From Salisapilia sapeloensis CBS 127946 (lineage: Eukaryota > Protista > Oomycota), in NCBI GenBank assembly GCA_023334545.1, contig JAADVB010000053.1, forward strand, positions 24,282 through 88,281: a stretch of 64,000 bases of DNA, in the 5' to 3' direction. Below, piece after piece: positions 44,469-52,412 of the stretch (positions are counted from its first letter, which is position 1; each line of letters opens with the position of its first letter). Below the pieces are notes generated by a model. That model made no database searches, was not told the origin of the DNA, and was given only the letters and a program-made list of their open reading frames with translations. The position numbers and the translations under genes were made by a program.

Positions 44469-47400
44469 ATGGTCAAGCGCAAGAAGCACGACAAGGATAA
44501 ATACTACAACTTGGCACGGCAGCAAGGCTACCGAGCTCGGTCTGCCTTCAAGCTCATCCAGTTGAACAAAAAGTATGACTTTTTGTCCACAGCCAAGGTC
44601 TGCATCGATCTATGTGCTGCACCGGGTGGATGGTGTCAAGTCGCTGCAAAGTACATGCCTGCTTCGAGCATTATCCTCGGTATCGATCTCTTGCCGATTC
44701 GACCAATCCGTGGTGTCAAGACGTTCCAGTGTGATATCACGACGCCGAGGTGTCGTCAGATTATCAAGCAAGAGACGCAAAGCTGGCAAGCGGATGTCGT
44801 CCTGTGTGACGGTGCACCAAACGTTGGTGCCCAATATGCCAAGGATGCGTACGTTCAGAATGAACTCTCGCTCGTGGCGTTGAAACTCGCCGTCGACGTC
44901 ATGGGACGTGGAGCTACTTTTGTAAGCAAAGTCTTCCGTTCGCAAGATTACAATGCCTTGCTCTGGGTCTTCAAGCAGCTCTTTAAGAAAGTCAGTGCGA
45001 CGAAACCACTGTCATCTCGTAACGAGTCTGCTGAAATCTTTGTCGTGTGCGAGCACTACGTTGCTCCTCACTCGATCGACCCGAAGCTCTTCGATCCAAA
45101 GTACGTCTTTGATCAACTGGAGAACCAAGACAAGGGTATCACGATCTTCCATCCCAAGTTTGGTGACCGAAAGCGTCATCGAGAAGGTAAATTGCGTTTT
45201 CTTGTACAAAAATCGGCTACTCTATTACTAGAGTCGCTAGCTCTCAGTCCCCCATTGGTTGCTAGTGCTCCCCGTAGCCAAGAATAAAATCAAGCCCCCT
45301 GCCTCTTATCTGCAATGTCTTCGGACGTTGCTGTGGATGTAGAGCTAGGGGGAGATCTATGACATTTCTTTTTATATGTATGTATCGGCTACTCTATTAC
45401 TAGAGTCGCTAGCTCGCATTCAACCATTGGATGCTAGTGCTCCCCGTAGCCAAGAGCAACATCAAGCCTACTGGCTCGCGCACTTAAAGCTTGTTCTTCA
45501 TTCGTGGAGAGCTTGTCGTGGGCGTGTGGTCAGGGGAGATCTATGACATTCTCTTTATATACACGACGTTCTTGTGTGAGCATTTTGCTGACAATTGGAT
45601 GCTCTCGTAGGTTACGATGAATCGCTTGGTGTCACTTTGACAAATGAAGTGAGCGTCTCGCAGTTTGTGGACTCATCCGATCCGATCCGTATGCTGACGG
45701 ATGCAACTTCGATCCACTTCCGTGACGGAGATGAAGTCTATCGCGACCACTCTGCTACTTCAGACGAAGTTGTGAATTGTCTTGGCGATCTAAAGGTACG
45801 ATTTACTTTTCATTCTTTCACGTGGGGAAAGAAATGAAGAGAAGCTGAAAACGTCCGAGCGCCACTGTTGTTCCGGCGCCGGATTCATTTCTGGTAAAAC
45901 CCTCCGGAAGCCAGTGGTTAGCGCATGATGTATAACTTGCATCCTATTGCTGTCTGATCTTTCCCCTGCATCTTTACTCTTATTGTCCATAGACGTACTC
46001 ACGTCTTCTGAACTAGGTTCTTGGCAAGTCGGACTTTAAGATGCTACTTCGATGGCGGTCTAAGATGCTCGAGTACAAGAAAGAGCTCATTCGTCAAGAA
46101 GCTGGTGACGAAGACGAGGACGAGAAAGAGTCTGACAAAGACGATGAGGAAGACGGTAGCAAGAACATGACGGATCAAGAGAAAGACGCGATGATCCGAG
46201 AGGAACTCGCTCAGCTCCGTGCCAACGTCCAAGCGAAGAAGAAGCGCGAGAAGAAGAAGGTGCGTTCACGCTGCATGCAACTGTATATTTGTTGGCGTAT
46301 TAAAGTAGTCCACATCCGCACTGCTTCCTTGGAAGTGGACTCCCGTTATTCGCCTATACGAAACCAACTCCTAATCCCGAGTGGCCTCTTTCCCATGGGC
46401 TTCAGCGGTCGATCTGGGTCGGACACTTCGTTCTGTATAAACATCGGCAGCAATCCAAAGCCCCGACCGATCCTATTCGGTCGGTTATGGTCCTTGAACA
46501 GATCGGCTATTGACGCTGCCAAGATTGAAACCCAATGCAGCCTCAGCTATCCTGAACCTTCTGAACCATGGGTTCTGGACCGTTCTTGTGCTCATACATG
46601 ACAACTATATGTGTCTCTATCTTCATGACATCCATACTTACATCTTTTCAACCTTTAGGAACGTGAACGCAAGAGGAAGCTGCGTGTACGTGCTGCTCTG
46701 GGTATGAACGAGCAAGGTATTGATCCGACGGAAGCCGAGTCGATCTTTAGCCTTTCGAGTGTCAAGATGACCAAGGGCAAGGCTGATAACTTGGAGAATG
46801 TTGATGCATCTTCGTCAGAAGAAGAGGAAGAAGAGGAGGAGGAGAAGGAAGGGGAGAGCGATGAAGAGTACCAGAAGTTGTTGGAAGGTCAAATGGACAA
46901 GTTGTACGATGAGTACTTGAGTCGTCGTGGTGACAAGGAGAAGGGTCGGAAGGCTATCAAGCGGTCCAAGGTCGCGAAGCGTGCGATTGCTGGCGATGCT
47001 GTCATCCAAGACAGCGAGATGTATGATGGTGACAAGGACCAGTACCGTCAGATGATCAACCCGGAGGAGGTATGTAGCTGCTCTTTTCTTTTGTATAGAA
47101 ACCCCCACGCAGTGTTATCTGTTCCGAGTCCACCCGTACTCTTGTTCAGTTGTCAAACGTGGGGAAGATTAACTTGGGGGTGACATTGTCTGCCCAGTAT
47201 GTCTCGTTGCAGTACACGGCATGTCGGTCCTGATTCACCCCCACATCCATCTACCTTCTACTCCTTATACTCAGTATCTTACTCTTGTGCGTTATAGAGC
47301 TCCGATGATAGTGATGATGAGACGGAGAAGCTCAATGTGTCTTTGAAGACCAAGGAGAAACCGAACGCTGCTGTTGCTCGTTGGTTCTCGGATAACAAGT

Positions 47401-48362
47401 TGTTCGATGATGTCGATGAGAAAGAGTCGTTCGACGTCACGGAAATGCCCAAGACGGATAAACAAGTCCGAAAGGAGAAGCGGAAGGCGACTCGTGAACG
47501 TCAAGAGCGACGTACCCAGCGGAAGGAGAAGAAGGAGGCTGCGGAGCTTGATCAAGAGGTCACTACTGGCTTTGACGTTGCTGCTGCGAATGACGAGAGC
47601 GACAGTGAAGATGAGCCGTCGGGCGAGTCTGCGAAAAAGAAGGCGTTGATCCGATCTGGTATGGGTGCAGCTCTCCAGTCCGAGAGTGAAGCGAAGGAGA
47701 AGCCGTTTGAAGTCGTGAGTGCCAATGAACCAGAGACGGGGGCTGGTGGCTTGCCGGTGCATGATGACCGCAAGTACGACTCGGATCATGAAGAGTACGA
47801 TGCCGAAGACCGCGCTCGAACGCTTGCTTTGGCGACGATGATGACAAAGAAGTCGCAAGCTAAAGACATGCTTGATGCTAGTTACAATCGGTATGCGTGG
47901 AACGATCCGAGTACTCTTCCCGAGTGGTTTATGGATGATGAAGAGAAGCATTACCGTCCTCAGATTCCGATCTCGAAGCAAGTTATGGCGCAAATGCGTG
48001 AGCGATTCATGGACTTGGCGACAAAGCCTGTGAAGAAGGTGGCAGAAGCACGAGCTCGTAAGAAGCGTCTGCAGACAAAGAAGGCGACTCAAGCGAAAAA
48101 GAAGGCGACAGATATTGCCAACCTACCGGATATGTCTACGCGTGAGAAGCTTAAGGCTATTGATAAGGCCATGAAGGGCGCGGAGCTCAAGAAGCAGAAC
48201 AAGGTCTACGTCGTGTCTCGACGTGGTGGCAAGTCGAATGCCAAGGGATCGACTGGCAGTGGCAAGGTGAAACTTGTGGACTCTCGTATGCGATCGGATA
48301 AGCGAGGTGCGGAGAAGAATGGGAAGACGAAGAAGAAGGGCAAGAAGAGTAAGAAGAGATAA
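44469..48362 (+). CDS. SPB1: Pre-rRNA 2'-O-methyltransferase Spb1/FTSJ3; introns 45187-45610, 45796-46016, 46260-46658, 47070-47297
   Basis: [85 protein letters not shown]. Confidence 0.97.
45214..45367 (+). ncRNA. Predicted H/ACA snoRNA copy A (SPB1 intron 1)
   Basis: Hairpin ggctac/gtagcc with upper stem gctagc/gctagt, H box AGAATA at 45281, second hairpin cccct/agggg, and ACA at 45362. Confidence 0.8.
45386..45551 (+). ncRNA. Predicted H/ACA snoRNA copy B (tandem paralogue, SPB1 intron 1)
   Basis: Stems and pocket of the 5' hairpin match copy A; H box AGAGCA at 45453; conserved 3' end ggggagatctatgACAtt. Confidence 0.8.
45824..45966 (+). ncRNA. Predicted C/D box snoRNA with a long internal hairpin (SPB1 intron 2)
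   Basis: Perfect 9-bp terminal stem ggggaaaga/tctttcccc; C box ATGAAGA (45834); candidate D' CCGA (45855); C' ATGATGT (45925); D CTGA (45954). Confidence 0.78.
46294..46428 (+). ncRNA. Predicted H/ACA snoRNA (SPB1 intron 3, first)
   Basis: ggcg/cgcc lower stem, tccac/gtgga upper stem, H box ATACGA at 46356, second hairpin, ACA at 46423. Confidence 0.62.
46446..46606 (+). ncRNA. Possible H/ACA-like RNA (SPB1 intron 3, second)
   Basis: Stems ggcagc/gctgcc, agcc/ggct and ccgaccga/tcggtcgg; degenerate H box AGATTG; second hairpin gaacc/ggttc; ACA at 46596 or 46601. Confidence 0.5.
47103..47248 (+). ncRNA. H/ACA snoRNA, snR35/SNORA13-like (SPB1 intron 4)
   Basis: ccccacg/cgtgggg stem, H box AGATTA (47166), gggggtga/tcaccccc stem, ACA (47243). 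Pocket GTGTT + GTCAAA pairs with 18S UUUGAC-U-C-AACAC, with the 3' guide starting 14 nt before the H box. Confidence 0.88.
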
Positions 48363-48508: not shown

Positions 48509-49460
48509 TTAGCCTCGGAACGATCGAGAGAATTGTTCGCGTGCCGATGCAAAGGCCTACAAGTTGGAGTGAGATAGAGTAGCTGTACAAGGTGATAGGA
48601 GAAACGGACTTGTGAAATCGTGAGCTCGTTCACTGGCACTTCCTGGTTGATTCCCTGTGACGATCGAGTTAGTGTTTGTGGTGTCTAGTCCGATGTAGAA
48701 CGAGGGGTATACCCGCATGAGTACGCGGTTGACGATCGAGGATGAGTCTGCTTCTAGAATGACTCTGAAAGCAGCATTGAATAGCGTGAGAAGGAGAATG
48801 GAGATTTGTAGAGCGTAGGAAGACGTACCCTCCATCGACGACCTCGTCGAACGTCAGCAAGACCATCTCAATGTTGTCTAGCATAACCATGCGTTCCATA
48901 CGGCCCCTGTTTTGTGATACAATCTCGTTAGGTCGAGTGCAGAACTGGGGATTTGATGGACGTACTTGAGCAGCGTGCTGACGGCATCGAATGCAGCTTC
49001 CAAGACATGAAGCAGGACGACTTCATTCTGTTAGATATCGAGTGAGCTTGTCTGCGTTATACCATAGCAAAGGAGTATGGCTGACCTCTGTGGAGGACCC
49101 GATGACGTGCATGGTGACATCTGCGCCACTGCGATAAACGCTGACAATGTTTTCAATCAGCACAATATCGGCTAGAGACCACAAAATAGCGTCAATACAG
49201 CAGCCTCTACATCCATACCAACATTGCAAGTCCAATACCTTCCATCCGCGGGTTGGAGTTCTTCGTTTTCGCGTAGATCTTTTTCTCGAGCGCAGCCTTG
49301 TCCTTGTTGGACCCCATAGTCTGGTCGTAGTACTTGGCATACACGCGATTGCCCTCGCTATCCAGCACAATAATACCCTTTACATTCGGTGTCGTCACCT
49401 ATGTATTCCATCAGCCTCTGCAAGTCTCCAAACAGCCATCCTAACGCCTACCTTGGCCAT
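48509..49460 (-). CDS. COPZ1: Coatomer subunit zeta, multi-exon
   Basis: VKGIIVLDSEGNRVYAKYY, ENIVSVYRS, LDNIEMVLLTFDEVVDGG.ILEAD, AFASAREQFSRSFRG. Confidence 0.93.
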
Positions 49461-49691: not shown

Positions 49692-52412
49692 TCACTCGAT
49701 GTACGCATTCCCATCATTCTCAGTCGTATTAAGCGCCGTCATCCGTCGTTCATCATTCGTTACGAATGTGTTTTGACGAGTAAAGTCACCTCCATCGAGC
49801 ACATCGATAAGTGCTGGGTGACTGCGATGGTATGCCGGAGCATTATTACGTGCGTTCAGGGCAAAGATACGGGACATTTTCTGCTGGAATCGGAACTTGT
49901 ACGGCTTTGGAGGTAACGCAGACACACCATCCGGGTCCTTTCGCTTGAAAGTGGTCTTGTAGAAACGTTCCATCTTCTTCTCAAACGTCCATTGCTGTAG
50001 AAAGTCGATGATGCCAAAGTGGTACAAGGATGGACCAGAGACGCTTGTCGCCGGTTGAGTGTAGAAAGCGTCTTCGTACTTGCCTGACGGAGGGACAAAG
50101 TCGCTCGTGTCGACAAAGTACTCGGAGCTCTGGACGCCCATGAGAAGACTATAGTCCATGATGCCTTGCTCACATAGAAAGTCGCTGTCCTTGTGGATCT
50201 GGTCGTAGATCCGATGCGCCTGACTCGGATCGATGCGGATTTTCATCATCAGGTCATTGTCCTTGAGGACAATGTCCGGTTCATGGAAGTTCATCCCGTC
50301 GCCACACTCCTGATTCCGCGTGCTACCGAAGGTGTACGAGGCATTGCAGTATCGACATGTGGTCTTGTCTCCAGGTCGAGGCACCTTGGCATTCCGATCG
50401 ACCCAGCTACCCTTGATGTCATATCGATGGTGGATGACTTGCGTGTCGGCAAACAAGTTGCCCATGACGACAAAGTAGTACATTTTCCCATACAACGAGA
50501 CTGCGTGGCAACCGTAGAAGCGTGTGAGGAGCGTATTCGGGTTGCTCGTCACATACGCTTCGTAGTTTCGAGCGATCTTACGTAGGAAATTGCATTCTTC
50601 CGGCGACATGGTCTTCACGATCAGTCGTTCGTCGGACGTAAAGAACATGAAAGCACCGCTACGACCTTCACTAAACCTCTCTTTCGTCGTTGCACCGAAG
50701 AGCTGGACATACTCTTGGTCCTGGATACCAAACGTCAGTCGGATGTTACGGAAAGCACCAGGACAGAAGGACCAGAATTTGATCGATTTGCCCTTGTTGT
50801 CACTACCAGAGATCGGGATCGTAATGAGTTCATCCGTGACAGCTCGCACAGACTCTTTGATACCGGACGTCGTATAGTACAAGATCTCAGATCGAAGCGC
50901 AGTGTTCACTTGGGGACTCAAGTCGACGTCGACGTCTGCCGAGTCCTGTCCTGCGCCATTGCGCCGATGCTCGATGCTATTGACAGCAAACCAGATGACA
51001 TAGTCCAAGTAGCCTTTACTAGCGATTAGGAAGACAACGATCTGCCGAAAGACTTGTGCGACGGCTCGAGAGTTTGGCGAGTCACTCTTGGTCGTCAAAA
51101 AATAGGCACACATGTACAAGAGAAGAAGGAGAAGCCAGTAAAAGACGTAGGCACCTGTGAAGAAAGACATGTAGTTGAGGACACGTAGACGGATGTTGTA
51201 CGTCTTAGGGACACCACGGAGGTAGAGTCTCTGCCATGCAAGAGTGAGGACGCAGACGGAGACGAAGAGAACGAGGATGACAAAGCTGTAGATGAGGATC
51301 CACGGCCATTGCTGGGTGTTCATAAAGCTACTGGATGAAGCGCAGATCTCGATGTTATCTGGACACTTGGCACCTTCGTCACAGCAGACGCGAGACGACG
51401 CGGAGCAAAAGCCGATGACAGTGTCGATGTCGCTATTGTACTTGACAGCTCTACCGTCGACAGTGAAGAAACCTCCAGCGCCGTCGATGCTCCACGTGAT
51501 GACGCCCATGACGATGCCGCCGAGCCAGACCCAGAAGTGATAAAAGCGCATGAGTCGCTTGTAGCTCGTGAAGGGGCTTGTGAGGGAAAAGAAGAGATCG
51601 CAGGCCATGACGAGACCCCAGGCTTCCGACGCGAAGAAGAAGAACTCGGTCACGCCTGCGAGTCGAGAACAGTTCTCGTTGCTTTCGTTTGTCGGATCAA
51701 AGTCCACGATGACGTTTAGGAGCAAGCAGATGGCGAAGAAGATGCCGAGGACGGCACGTAAGTGGACGATCGGATTGGGATGCTGGTGCCACGTCTTCTT
51801 TCGAAAGTACGTGACGACAACAGCCGAGCCGCAGATGATCGTGTTGGCCGAGCCGGCGATGATACCTGTCCAACGGTAGTTGTAGAGCGCGACGGAAATG
51901 CCGAAGAAGGCCATGGAGAGACAGCATCCGAGTAATTGGGACTTTCGATTCTCAAACCACTTGACCTTTGCTTGTGGCGTCGACTGCGTCGTCCCGTGGA
52001 AATCATTCGCCATGTCTTTATTAATGACACGAATAATATTATTCGTGTTCATGCGAGGCGTCGACATGAGCGGTTGCTGGTACGCTCGAGAGCTCATACT
52101 GACATCCTGTTCGTGATTCTGAGCACTCGAGATGCTTGTCTGCGATTGCTCGGCAAGAGTGTAGCCAAAGCTTTCGGCCGAGTGCATCTGGGATAGAGGT
52201 CCGCGTCGTTGCGTGTTCTGCTGCTGGATGTAATTCGAGTCGGTAAAGTCACCATCATCCATTGGTGGACCGCGAGACTGTCCCATGACGTACATGCCTT
52301 CGGCCTGTGGACTAAAGTGGCTTTGATACGGGTGCTCTTCCAAGACCGGTATGCGACGCGTGCTATCCGGGGCAGATGAATCGCTATTGGCGTGTGCCGG
52401 GCGATGGGGCAT
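49692..52412 (-). CDS. GPCR-PIP kinase fusion (7TM + phosphatidylinositol phosphate kinase); intronless
   Basis: 7TM region with C-x-x-L-A..F..ASEAW..MACDL in TM3. PIPK motifs SEGRSGAFMFFTSD..IVKT, LLTRFYG, YDIKGS, LKDND, IMDYSLL, GIIDFLQ. Confidence 0.95.
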   Translation of the reverse strand: MPHRPAHANSDSSAPDSTRRIPVLEEHPYQSHFSPQAEGMYVMGQSRGPPMDDGDFTDSNYIQQQNTQRRGPLSQMHSAESFGYTLAEQSQTSISSAQNHEQDVSMSSRAYQQPLMSTPRMNTNNIIRVINKDMANDFHGTTQSTPQAKVKWFENRKSQLLGCCLSMAFFGISVALYNYRWTGIIAGSANTIICGSAVVVTYFRKKTWHQHPNPIVHLRAVLGIFFAICLLLNVIVDFDPTNESNENCSRLAGVTEFFFFASEAWGLVMACDLFFSLTSPFTSYKRLMRFYHFWVWLGGIVMGVITWSIDGAGGFFTVDGRAVKYNSDIDTVIGFCSASSRVCCDEGAKCPDNIEICASSSSFMNTQQWPWILIYSFVILVLFVSVCVLTLAWQRLYLRGVPKTYNIRLRVLNYMSFFTGAYVFYWLLLLLLYMCAYFLTTKSDSPNSRAVAQVFRQIVVFLIASKGYLDYVIWFAVNSIEHRRNGAGQDSADVDVDLSPQVNTALRSEILYYTTSGIKESVRAVTDELITIPISGSDNKGKSIKFWSFCPGAFRNIRLTFGIQDQEYVQLFGATTKERFSEGRSGAFMFFTSDERLIVKTMSPEECNFLRKIARNYEAYVTSNPNTLLTRFYGCHAVSLYGKMYYFVVMGNLFADTQVIHHRYDIKGSWVDRNAKVPRPGDKTTCRYCNASYTFGSTRNQECGDGMNFHEPDIVLKDNDLMMKIRIDPSQAHRIYDQIHKDSDFLCEQGIMDYSLLMGVQSSEYFVDTSDFVPPSGKYEDAFYTQPATSVSGPSLYHFGIIDFLQQWTFEKKMERFYKTTFKRKDPDGVSALPPKPYKFRFQQKMSRIFALNARNNAPAYHRSHPALIDVLDGGDFTRQNTFVTNDERRMTALNTTENDGNAYIE

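Follow-up and report, generated by a model that had tools for sequence, protein, structure and literature searches.

The SPB1 gene and its introns

The DNA analysed here, called the window, is a stretch of 64,000 nucleotides (nt) of the oomycete Salisapilia sapeloensis CBS 127946 (contig JAADVB010000053.1), and coordinates without a locus prefix are window positions. The SPB1/FTSJ3 gene, coding for an S-adenosylmethionine (AdoMet)-dependent ribosomal RNA (rRNA) 2'-O-methyltransferase, was located at 44469..48362 on the plus strand by its open reading frame (ORF), its Pfam domains and spliced RNA contigs. SPB1 is very probably the protein-coding host of six intron-encoded small nucleolar RNAs (snoRNAs), five of the H/ACA and one of the C/D type. 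The five exons (44469-45186, 45611-45795, 46017-46259, 46659-47069 and 47298-48362) join into an uninterrupted ORF of 873 amino acids. The first exon matches Pfam FtsJ (E 1.9e-52) and the last one Spb1_C (E 6.3e-56). The closest named relative is a protein of Thraustotheca clavata, with 89% amino acid identity over exon 1; this and the GPCR-PIPK gene downstream are in keeping with an oomycete of Saprolegniales type.

The four introns, all GT..AG and on the plus strand, measure 424 nt (intron 1, 45187-45610), 221 nt (intron 2, 45796-46016), 399 nt (intron 3, 46260-46658) and 228 nt (intron 4, 47070-47297). The original prediction, made from the letters of the window, had given sizes of about 220-425 nt with exactly these limits. 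All four splice joints were present at the same limits in RNA contigs from four runs and two organisms; two runs came from an organism identical to the window (organism A) and the other two from a relative with about 95% identity (organism B). Most other introns in the window had been put at about 45-70 nt. This could be upheld for the one neighbour checked, a minus-strand gene whose six introns of 53, 58, 64, 59, 58 and 67 nt were confirmed by RNA joints. The size contrast with SPB1 is therefore real for this checkable neighbour.

Intron 1 contains two tandem H/ACA RNAs, intron 2 the C/D RNA, intron 3 two H/ACA RNAs 12 nt apart, and intron 4 one H/ACA RNA, so that the box-flanked structures expected in every SPB1 intron were found in their places. 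All six RNAs, of 140-169 nt each, lie wholly within the RNA-confirmed introns on the sense strand of SPB1; the first RNA of an intron begins 25-30 nt behind the 5' splice site, and the last one is followed by 47-58 nt up to the 3' splice site. Each intron can be seen as the frame of a normal short intron into which one or two snoRNAs have been inserted, and the SPB1 introns appear to be enlarged because of this conserved cargo.

The depth in run X1 was 57.8 for intron 3 and 21.5 for intron 4, and 145-386 for the exon contigs. The depth upstream of SPB1 was zero in the RNA assemblies, so the intron contigs are RNA and not contaminating DNA. Furthermore, the C/D sequence was present in two further RNA assemblies of organism A (runs X4 and X10).

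Architecture and conservation of the intronic RNAs

The H/ACA RNAs were aligned as families A1 (RNA 1), A3 (RNA 3a), A4 (RNA 3b) and A5 (RNA 4). The consensus fold of every family has two hairpins, and all five RNAs of the window are built as hairpin-hinge-hairpin-tail units with the H box and the ACA in place. All are on the plus strand. RNA 1a (45212..45368) has the H box AGAAUA at 45281-45286, the ACA at 45362-45364 and the arms of its 5' pocket at 45227-45235 and 45267-45270. RNA 1b (45384..45552) has the H box AGAGCA at 45453-45458 and the ACA at 45546-45548. For RNA 3a (46290..46429), the H box is AUACGA (46356-46361) and the ACA lies at 46423-46425. RNA 3b (46442..46602) possesses a near-consensus H box, AGAUUG (46522-46527), an ACA at 46596-46598 and 3' pocket arms at 46541-46548 and 46581-46587. 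In RNA 4 (47099..47250), the H box AGAUUA (47166-47171) and the ACA (47243-47245) are accompanied by 5' pocket arms at 47112-47116 and 47152-47157. The H box fits ANANNA in 10 of 10 members of family A1.

RNAs 1a and 1b form a direct repeat (45212-45305 / 45384-45477); their 5' hairpins are 88% identical and their 18-nt tails the same. The two copies share identical 5' pocket strands, and the interiors of their 3' hairpins are unrelated. The tandem duplication is lineage-specific: all eight relatives have a single copy, in an intron of 212-325 nt, and this copy resembles 1b most. The 3' guide arm of RNA 1 (45267-45273 and 45439-45445) reads GCUCCCC in both copies of the window and GCUACUU in 8 of 8 relatives; the former extends the pairing with the large subunit (LSU) rRNA described below by one base (GAGC instead of AGC). 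The 3' hairpin regions (45290-45368 and 45462-45552, plus strand; A1 columns 90-204) have a stem of 25-90 nt in which 9 of 11 pairs are compensatory over 10 sequences, and the single-stranded flanks of this stem, AUCAAGC and GAGAUCUAUG-ACA, are invariant in all 10. The UCAAGC of the flank is complementary to LSU GCUUGA, which includes the predicted target U of the 5' pocket.

The other H/ACA RNAs vary in their own ways. The 3' lower stem of RNA 3a changes across species from CCAAC/GUUGG through CCGAC/GUCGG to UUAAC/GUUGA. The 5' hairpin of RNA 3b is branched, and the 3' hairpin of RNA 4 in the window differs from that of its own relatives.

In the C/D RNA of intron 2 (45822..45968, plus strand; family A2, seven sequences), the C box AUGAAGA (45834-45840) and the D box CUGA (45954-45957) are joined by a terminal stem of 9 bp (45824-45832 / 45958-45966), with a D' box CCGA (45855-45858) and a C' box AUGAUGU (45925-45931). 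The D box CUGA is invariant and the C box is xUGAxGA in all members of A2, with the canonical GUGAUGA/AUGAUGA in the distant loci L009 and L005. Six of eight pairs of the terminal stem are compensatory, and none of 500 shuffles reached the observed value on four of five measures. Between D' and C' lies a nearly invariant domain of about 55 nt, which forms a long hairpin in the window (~45860-45920); its inner hairpin covaries, also in T. clavata and L005. A contiguous-duplex search of oomycete-like 18S, 5.8S, 28S, intergenic and external transcribed spacer (IGS/ETS) and internal transcribed spacer (ITS) sequences gave no duplex of at least 10 bp shared among the orthologues, and no conserved antisense stretch of 10-21 nt with a complement in the ribosomal DNA (rDNA) and its spacers was found next to D or D'. 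Because the guide stretches drift, no rDNA duplex is shared and the internal domain is conserved instead, the intron-2 RNA is read as an orphan C/D-type RNA, probably no conventional methylation guide and possibly of a non-guide kind. A resemblance to U14 domain A, U3 or U13 was dropped since the motifs were absent. The D-guide of some relatives is partly complementary (9/10) to CUGCGCAAGG, a conserved U6 sequence; this was not used as evidence.

Orthologous loci were obtained from Logan assemblies (L001, L003, L005, L006 and L007), a JGI metagenome (L002), ENA (L004) and T. clavata (L009). The L007 contig occurs once more, as L008, in a JGI metagenome; the eight distinct loci are of Saprolegniales type. 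Their exon-1 DNA is 73-81% identical to the window, and the introns of all eight stand at the same four codon positions. According to the splice-site search done in this analysis, introns 1-4 measure 320, 272, 530 and 264 nt in L001; 313, 282, 524 and 256 nt in L002; 301, 282, 555 and 247 nt in L003; 325, 318, 551 and 301 nt in L006; 212, 196, 449 and 210 nt in L005; and 233, 68, 615 and 210 nt in L004. The last locus, a more distant orthologue, is a natural control, with no C/D RNA in its intron 2, which is only 68 nt long (L004:7146-7213). Its intron 3 of 615 nt may hold other RNAs; the profile matches to family 3a there are weak.

With the window introns as the query, nhmmer matched blocks of the orthologous introns with E values of 1e-9 to 1e-25, and profile searches of the intronic blocks gave E values down to 1e-53. 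In a five-species alignment of intron 3, invariant columns amounted to 43% in RNA 3a and 57% in RNA 3b, and to 3% in the 5' flank, 0% in the spacer and 5% in the 3' flank. Conservation is thus confined to the RNA blocks; the flanks are unalignable, as neutral intron sequence should be at this divergence. The spacers of two-RNA introns are 12-15 nt in the window and 50-90 nt in the relatives. Neither the window nor the flanks of the related loci gave further copies of the elements. Between organisms A and B, the difference in the intronic blocks is 4-6%, similar to that in the coding exons.

Covariation across the orthologous introns had been named as a check of the original prediction, and the outcome was in its favour, with conserved blocks and compensatory pairs above shuffled and slid controls. 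Family A1 (10 sequences, 89.5% of cells paired) had 13 compensatory pairs, which were reached by 0/500 shuffles and compared with 7 in the best slid control. Family A2, the C/D RNA (7 sequences, 94.1% of cells paired), had 11 (0/500 shuffles), A3 (5 sequences) had 6 (5/500 shuffles), and A4 (5 sequences) had 9 (0/500 shuffles). In the 5' hairpin of A5 (7 sequences), 8 of 17 pairs were compensatory (0/500 shuffles). On most measures, few or none of the 500 shuffles thus equalled the stem covariation. Some effects of relatedness remain in these controls, but the slid controls, in which relatedness is kept, stayed far below the observed values for every family. While the stems changed on both sides, pocket strands and boxes remained invariant. 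The covarying conservation of the elements in orthologous introns shows that these hairpins did not arise by chance.

Predicted rRNA targets

No rRNA was found in the window. Reference rDNA was obtained by scanning a metagenome collection with the 18S 3' end as read in oomycetes, which gave five complete rDNA units from diverse eukaryotes and one oomycete-like unit, L021/L084. This unit has an oomycete-type ITS1 start, and the D1-D3 region of the L021 28S is 85-87% identical to two Pythium/Phytophthora-like fragments and 65-69% to others. In its intergenic spacer (L021:4095-7839, and L084) there are two 5S genes on the same strand as 18S and 28S. The target search was based on bipartite complementarity round an unpaired U-N; the 3' arm had to begin 13-17 nt ahead of the box.

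Three pockets placed a U 14-16 nt upstream of their box. The 5' pocket of RNA 1 is predicted to pair with LSU GAGC-UU-GACUCUAGU (L021 LSU 2687) through 13 Watson-Crick bp, 14 nt from the H box, and was equalled by 2/200 shuffles; the complementarity alone argues strongly for this target. The 3' pocket of RNA 3b fits LSU GGGAACG-UG-AGCUGGG (L021 LSU 3224) with 14 bp, of which 3-4 are G-U, 15 nt from the ACA, and the match held in the window and four relatives (score 12-13, 14-18/200 shuffles). The 5' pocket of RNA 4 fits small subunit (SSU) UUUGAC-UC-AACAC(GGG) (L021 SSU 1208), 14 nt from the H box. The window arms form 11 Watson-Crick bp (score 11, 45/200 shuffles) and those of the relatives 14 bp (score 13, 11/200 shuffles). 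All three target sites are identical in 6/6 rDNAs.

The modified nucleotides of yeast rRNA allowed the sites to be placed. Yeast 18S carries pseudouridines 1181 and 1187 and m1acp3-pseudouridine 1191 (snR35); 25S carries pseudouridine 2416 (snR11), Um2417 and Um2421 in one segment, and Um2921, Gm2922 (Spb1), pseudouridine 2923, pseudouridine 2944 (snR37), Am2946 and Cm2948 in another (PMC5699541 Table 1). The SSU target has U at -4 and -10, matching pseudouridines 1187 and 1181. The LSU target of RNA 1 has U at +1 and +5, matching Um2417 and Um2421, and that of RNA 3b has A at +2, C at +4 and UGU at -23..-21, matching Am2946, Cm2948 and Um2921-Gm2922-pseudouridine 2923. The three targets are taken as the equivalents of 1191, 2416 and 2944, because each pattern of neighbouring modifications fits only then. 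Accordingly, RNAs 1a and 1b have a predicted pocket for the U that corresponds to yeast 25S pseudouridine 2416 (snR11), and RNA 3b has one for the U that corresponds to 25S pseudouridine 2944 (snR37), 22 nt from G2922, which is the methylation substrate of Spb1 itself (PMC5699541).

All Eukarya share the m1acp3-pseudouridine of helix 31, whose formation in humans begins with SNORA13 (10.1101/840132), and therefore a guide of the snR35 type must exist in oomycetes. RNA 4 is the predicted guide for the helix 31 U of 18S and, because its pocket fits this hypermodified U, the putative functional counterpart of snR35/SNORA13.

The 5' pocket of RNA 3b might also have a target. In the register AAUCCAA / AGCC...GGCU / AUUG it can pair with UUGGAUUGUU, the A-loop strand with the equivalents of U2921 and G2922, and the U 4 nt upstream of GGAUUG (before GGAUUGUUC) is predicted to fall in the pocket. 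The score was 13.5 in the window (3/300 shuffles) and 10 in most relatives, with a spacing of 13 nt, so that the assignment of this pocket to the A-loop strand is tentative. For RNA 3a, the 5' pocket of the relatives fits SSU UAACGGG-UA-ACGGGGA with 7 + 6 bp. In the window three bases of the arm are changed (UUAAAGU vs UCCCAGU in the relatives), and only 2 bp with this site are left on that arm. The site of the relatives would be the position of human 18S pseudouridine 406, an equivalence for which a literature search gave no confirmation.

Several other candidates were rejected. LSU helix 69 as a target of RNA 3a gave best scores of 8 or below, at non-canonical offsets only. The match of RNA 1b to CCCUG-UU-GAGCUU was specific to the window, was absent from 1a and the relatives, and was taken as chance. 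The 5' pocket of RNA 3a on SSU AAUAACAGG-UC-UGUGAUGC and the 3' pocket of RNA 4 on several sites had mismatches in both arms and scored no better than shuffles. The 3' hairpin of RNA 1 offered no canonical pocket 14-16 nt from the ACA.

Interpretation, alternatives and relation to known systems

All four SPB1 introns hold conserved snoRNA-type RNAs with covarying stems and invariant pockets, and the original prediction of a multi-snoRNA host gene is sustained in this respect. The comparison of sequences establishes the architecture of the RNAs, their intronic position, selection on both structure and pocket, and complementarity to known sites. By analogy with the pathway established elsewhere, core proteins would assemble co-transcriptionally on the nascent intron; splicing and debranching would follow, and exonucleases would trim the intron back to the protected ribonucleoprotein (RNP). 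For the introns with two snoRNAs, an extra endonucleolytic cut or alternative processing of each transcript would be needed.

Rfam gave no family at its gathering score in the window, and neither the snR35 clan (CL00028) nor any other Rfam snoRNA family covers the RNAs; the Rfam search proposed with the original prediction was thus run and brought no assignment. The match of S_pombe_snR35 to the region of RNA 4 (15.5 bits vs a gathering score of 35) agrees with a target of the snR35 type and is far below the threshold, and a match of TtnuHACA1 reached 24.9 bits vs 100. At L001:3329-3391 (minus strand), a SNORD104 match of 23.3 bits (E 0.11), antisense to SPB1 intron 4, is probably noise.

A number of observations weigh against the interpretation of SPB1 as a snoRNA host. 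The best Rfam matches of the introns and of four relatives were to generic H/ACA families, at E 0.23-7.5, and were mutually inconsistent. The RNA contigs that cover the introns span the exon-intron borders and contain no mature snoRNA ends; since they cross these borders, they appear to be unspliced precursor. The H boxes of 3a and 3b depart from ANANNA in some species, with a final G in RNA 3b of the window and L001 and in RNA 3a of the relatives. The 3' hairpin of RNA 1 is non-canonical, its ACA being 9 nt from the stem without a lower stem. In the C/D RNA, conservation is lowest in the 10-20 nt that precede D and D'. As for the targets, the rRNA used for their prediction (L021) is from another oomycete-like organism and not from this genome, and complementarity alone argues moderately for the targets of RNAs 3b and 4. 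Moreover, 7 of 10 H/ACA hairpins gave no solid target, with scores no better than those of shuffled guides. The claim of six modification guides therefore holds in part: three pockets fall on known sites, the C/D RNA is without a conserved antisense element, and solid targets belong to 3 of 10 H/ACA hairpins, with one more tentative and none for the rest.

A more far-reaching proposal, which we consider rather unlikely, is that Spb1 and the RNA 3b of intron 3 work on the same piece of rRNA and that the C/D RNA forms a non-guide RNP with a new domain. One pocket of RNA 3b would then take up the U that corresponds to 25S-2944 and the other would pair across the A-loop UUGGAUUGUU, and one transcript would supply the enzyme and an RNA binding its substrate in a fixed ratio. 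RNA 3b would have to bind and then leave the substrate of Spb1, which would order the two modifications in time, and the intron-2 C/D RNA, with its nearly invariant domain of ~55 nt, would be of the chaperone or processing type. Any functional coupling to Spb1 beyond the co-expression of a guide 22 nt from G2922 is speculative.

The RNAs might also be real H/ACA- and C/D-type RNAs of which several are decaying or being retargeted, namely RNA 1a, the 5' pocket of 3a in the window and the C/D RNA. RNA 1a is a lineage-specific duplicate with a 3' hairpin unlike that of all orthologues, the 5' arm of 3a has lost most of the pairing kept in the relatives, the 3' guide arm of RNA 1 differs from that of all relatives, and the antisense regions of the C/D RNA drift. 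However, pocket strands and boxes have stayed the same in the two copies of RNA 1, and between organisms A and B the six blocks have changed no more than the coding exons, which makes such decay improbable.

Slightly less probable still is that the structures are cis-acting elements of the SPB1 pre-mRNA, serving autoregulation of splicing or intron retention by Spb1 or another biogenesis factor, and are not guides. The host encodes an RNA-binding, rRNA-modifying enzyme, and RNA 3b, being able to pair with the A-loop strand that Spb1 modifies, could mimic that strand. In addition, contigs of the whole intron reach about 20-25% of the exon depth for intron 3, and the RNA contigs show precursor rather than mature ends. 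A cis element would have no need of three pockets on three independently known pseudouridine sites, or of the full two-hairpin H/ACA layout with boxes in place and pockets 14-15 nt from them, and the C/D boxes with their covarying terminal stem also speak against it. Furthermore, a guide of the snR35 type must exist somewhere in every eukaryote (10.1101/840132). Finally, it is hardly credible that hairpins and boxes arose by chance in long introns or are left over from a mobile element, as the lack of a significant Rfam match might suggest, when conservation is restricted to the blocks in eight relatives, compensatory changes are far above shuffled and slid controls, and further copies are absent from the window and the locus flanks.

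The snoRNA host reading of SPB1 can be compared with known systems. The RNAs snR35 and SNORA13 (ACA13) address the same helix-31 uridine as the 5' pocket of RNA 4, which lies 14 nt from the H box. Yeast snR35 is an independent gene, and it has no significant similarity to RNA 4 in sequence or by covariance model (CM). Human SNORA13 is intron-encoded like RNA 4 (10.1101/2025.04.08.647803); its host is a long non-coding RNA (lncRNA), whereas that of RNA 4 is a protein-coding ribosome-biogenesis gene. The targets of snR37 and snR11 coincide with the predicted ones of the RNA 3b 3' pocket and the RNA 1 5' pocket, respectively, a coincidence of targets and not of sequence orthology; RNA 1 differs by its non-canonical 3' hairpin and RNA 3b by its branched 5' hairpin.

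For animals, intronic snoRNAs in ribosome-biogenesis genes are textbook knowledge; plants and fungi have them too, and in all three groups ribosomal-protein and biogenesis host genes carry one snoRNA per intron. SPB1 resembles such multi-snoRNA host genes in having the snoRNAs on the sense strand, with every intron occupied and H/ACA mixed with C/D. In contrast to the one-per-intron rule of vertebrates, two of its introns contain two snoRNAs each, 12-15 nt apart. For Phytophthora infestans, intronic pseudouridylation guides in ribosomal-protein genes were predicted with SnoGPS in 5'-proximal introns (PMC4696810). Those guides are likewise from an oomycete, intron-encoded, of the H/ACA type and in translation-related hosts. 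They were given without comparative or covariation support, whereas the SPB1 RNAs have another host, belong to a Saprolegniales-type order and are backed by covariation in eight relatives. In the searchable literature, nothing was found on snoRNAs of Saprolegniales or on SPB1/FTSJ3 as a snoRNA host. This and the absence of an Rfam family covering the RNAs agree with the suggestion of an unannotated locus. The arrangement of snoRNAs in introns of ribosome genes is known elsewhere, and these six RNAs are new.

Oomycete snoRNAs are essentially uncatalogued, and the six comparatively supported families would be the first supported ones from this group. RNA 4 would be the expected guide for the universal m1acp3-pseudouridine of 18S, hitherto missing in oomycetes. 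The long introns in a short-intron genome would be explained as well, and enlarged introns of ribosome-biogenesis genes are good places to seek snoRNAs. Moreover, an rRNA-modifying enzyme co-transcribed with predicted guides for the same rRNA neighbourhood is a testable case of co-expression. The finding leaves snoRNA biology as it is known unaltered.

As for the neighbourhood, the small gene with the six short introns lies at 48555-49460 on the minus strand. Its first exon resembles a small adaptor/coatomer sigma-zeta subunit, and Pfam gave nothing for its piece of 63 amino acids. Further downstream of SPB1, a minus-strand ORF of 906 amino acids (49692-52412) has a PIP5K kinase domain (E 4e-74) behind a weak match to a seven-transmembrane (7TM) receptor, an architecture of the GPCR-PIPK kind that is typical of oomycetes.

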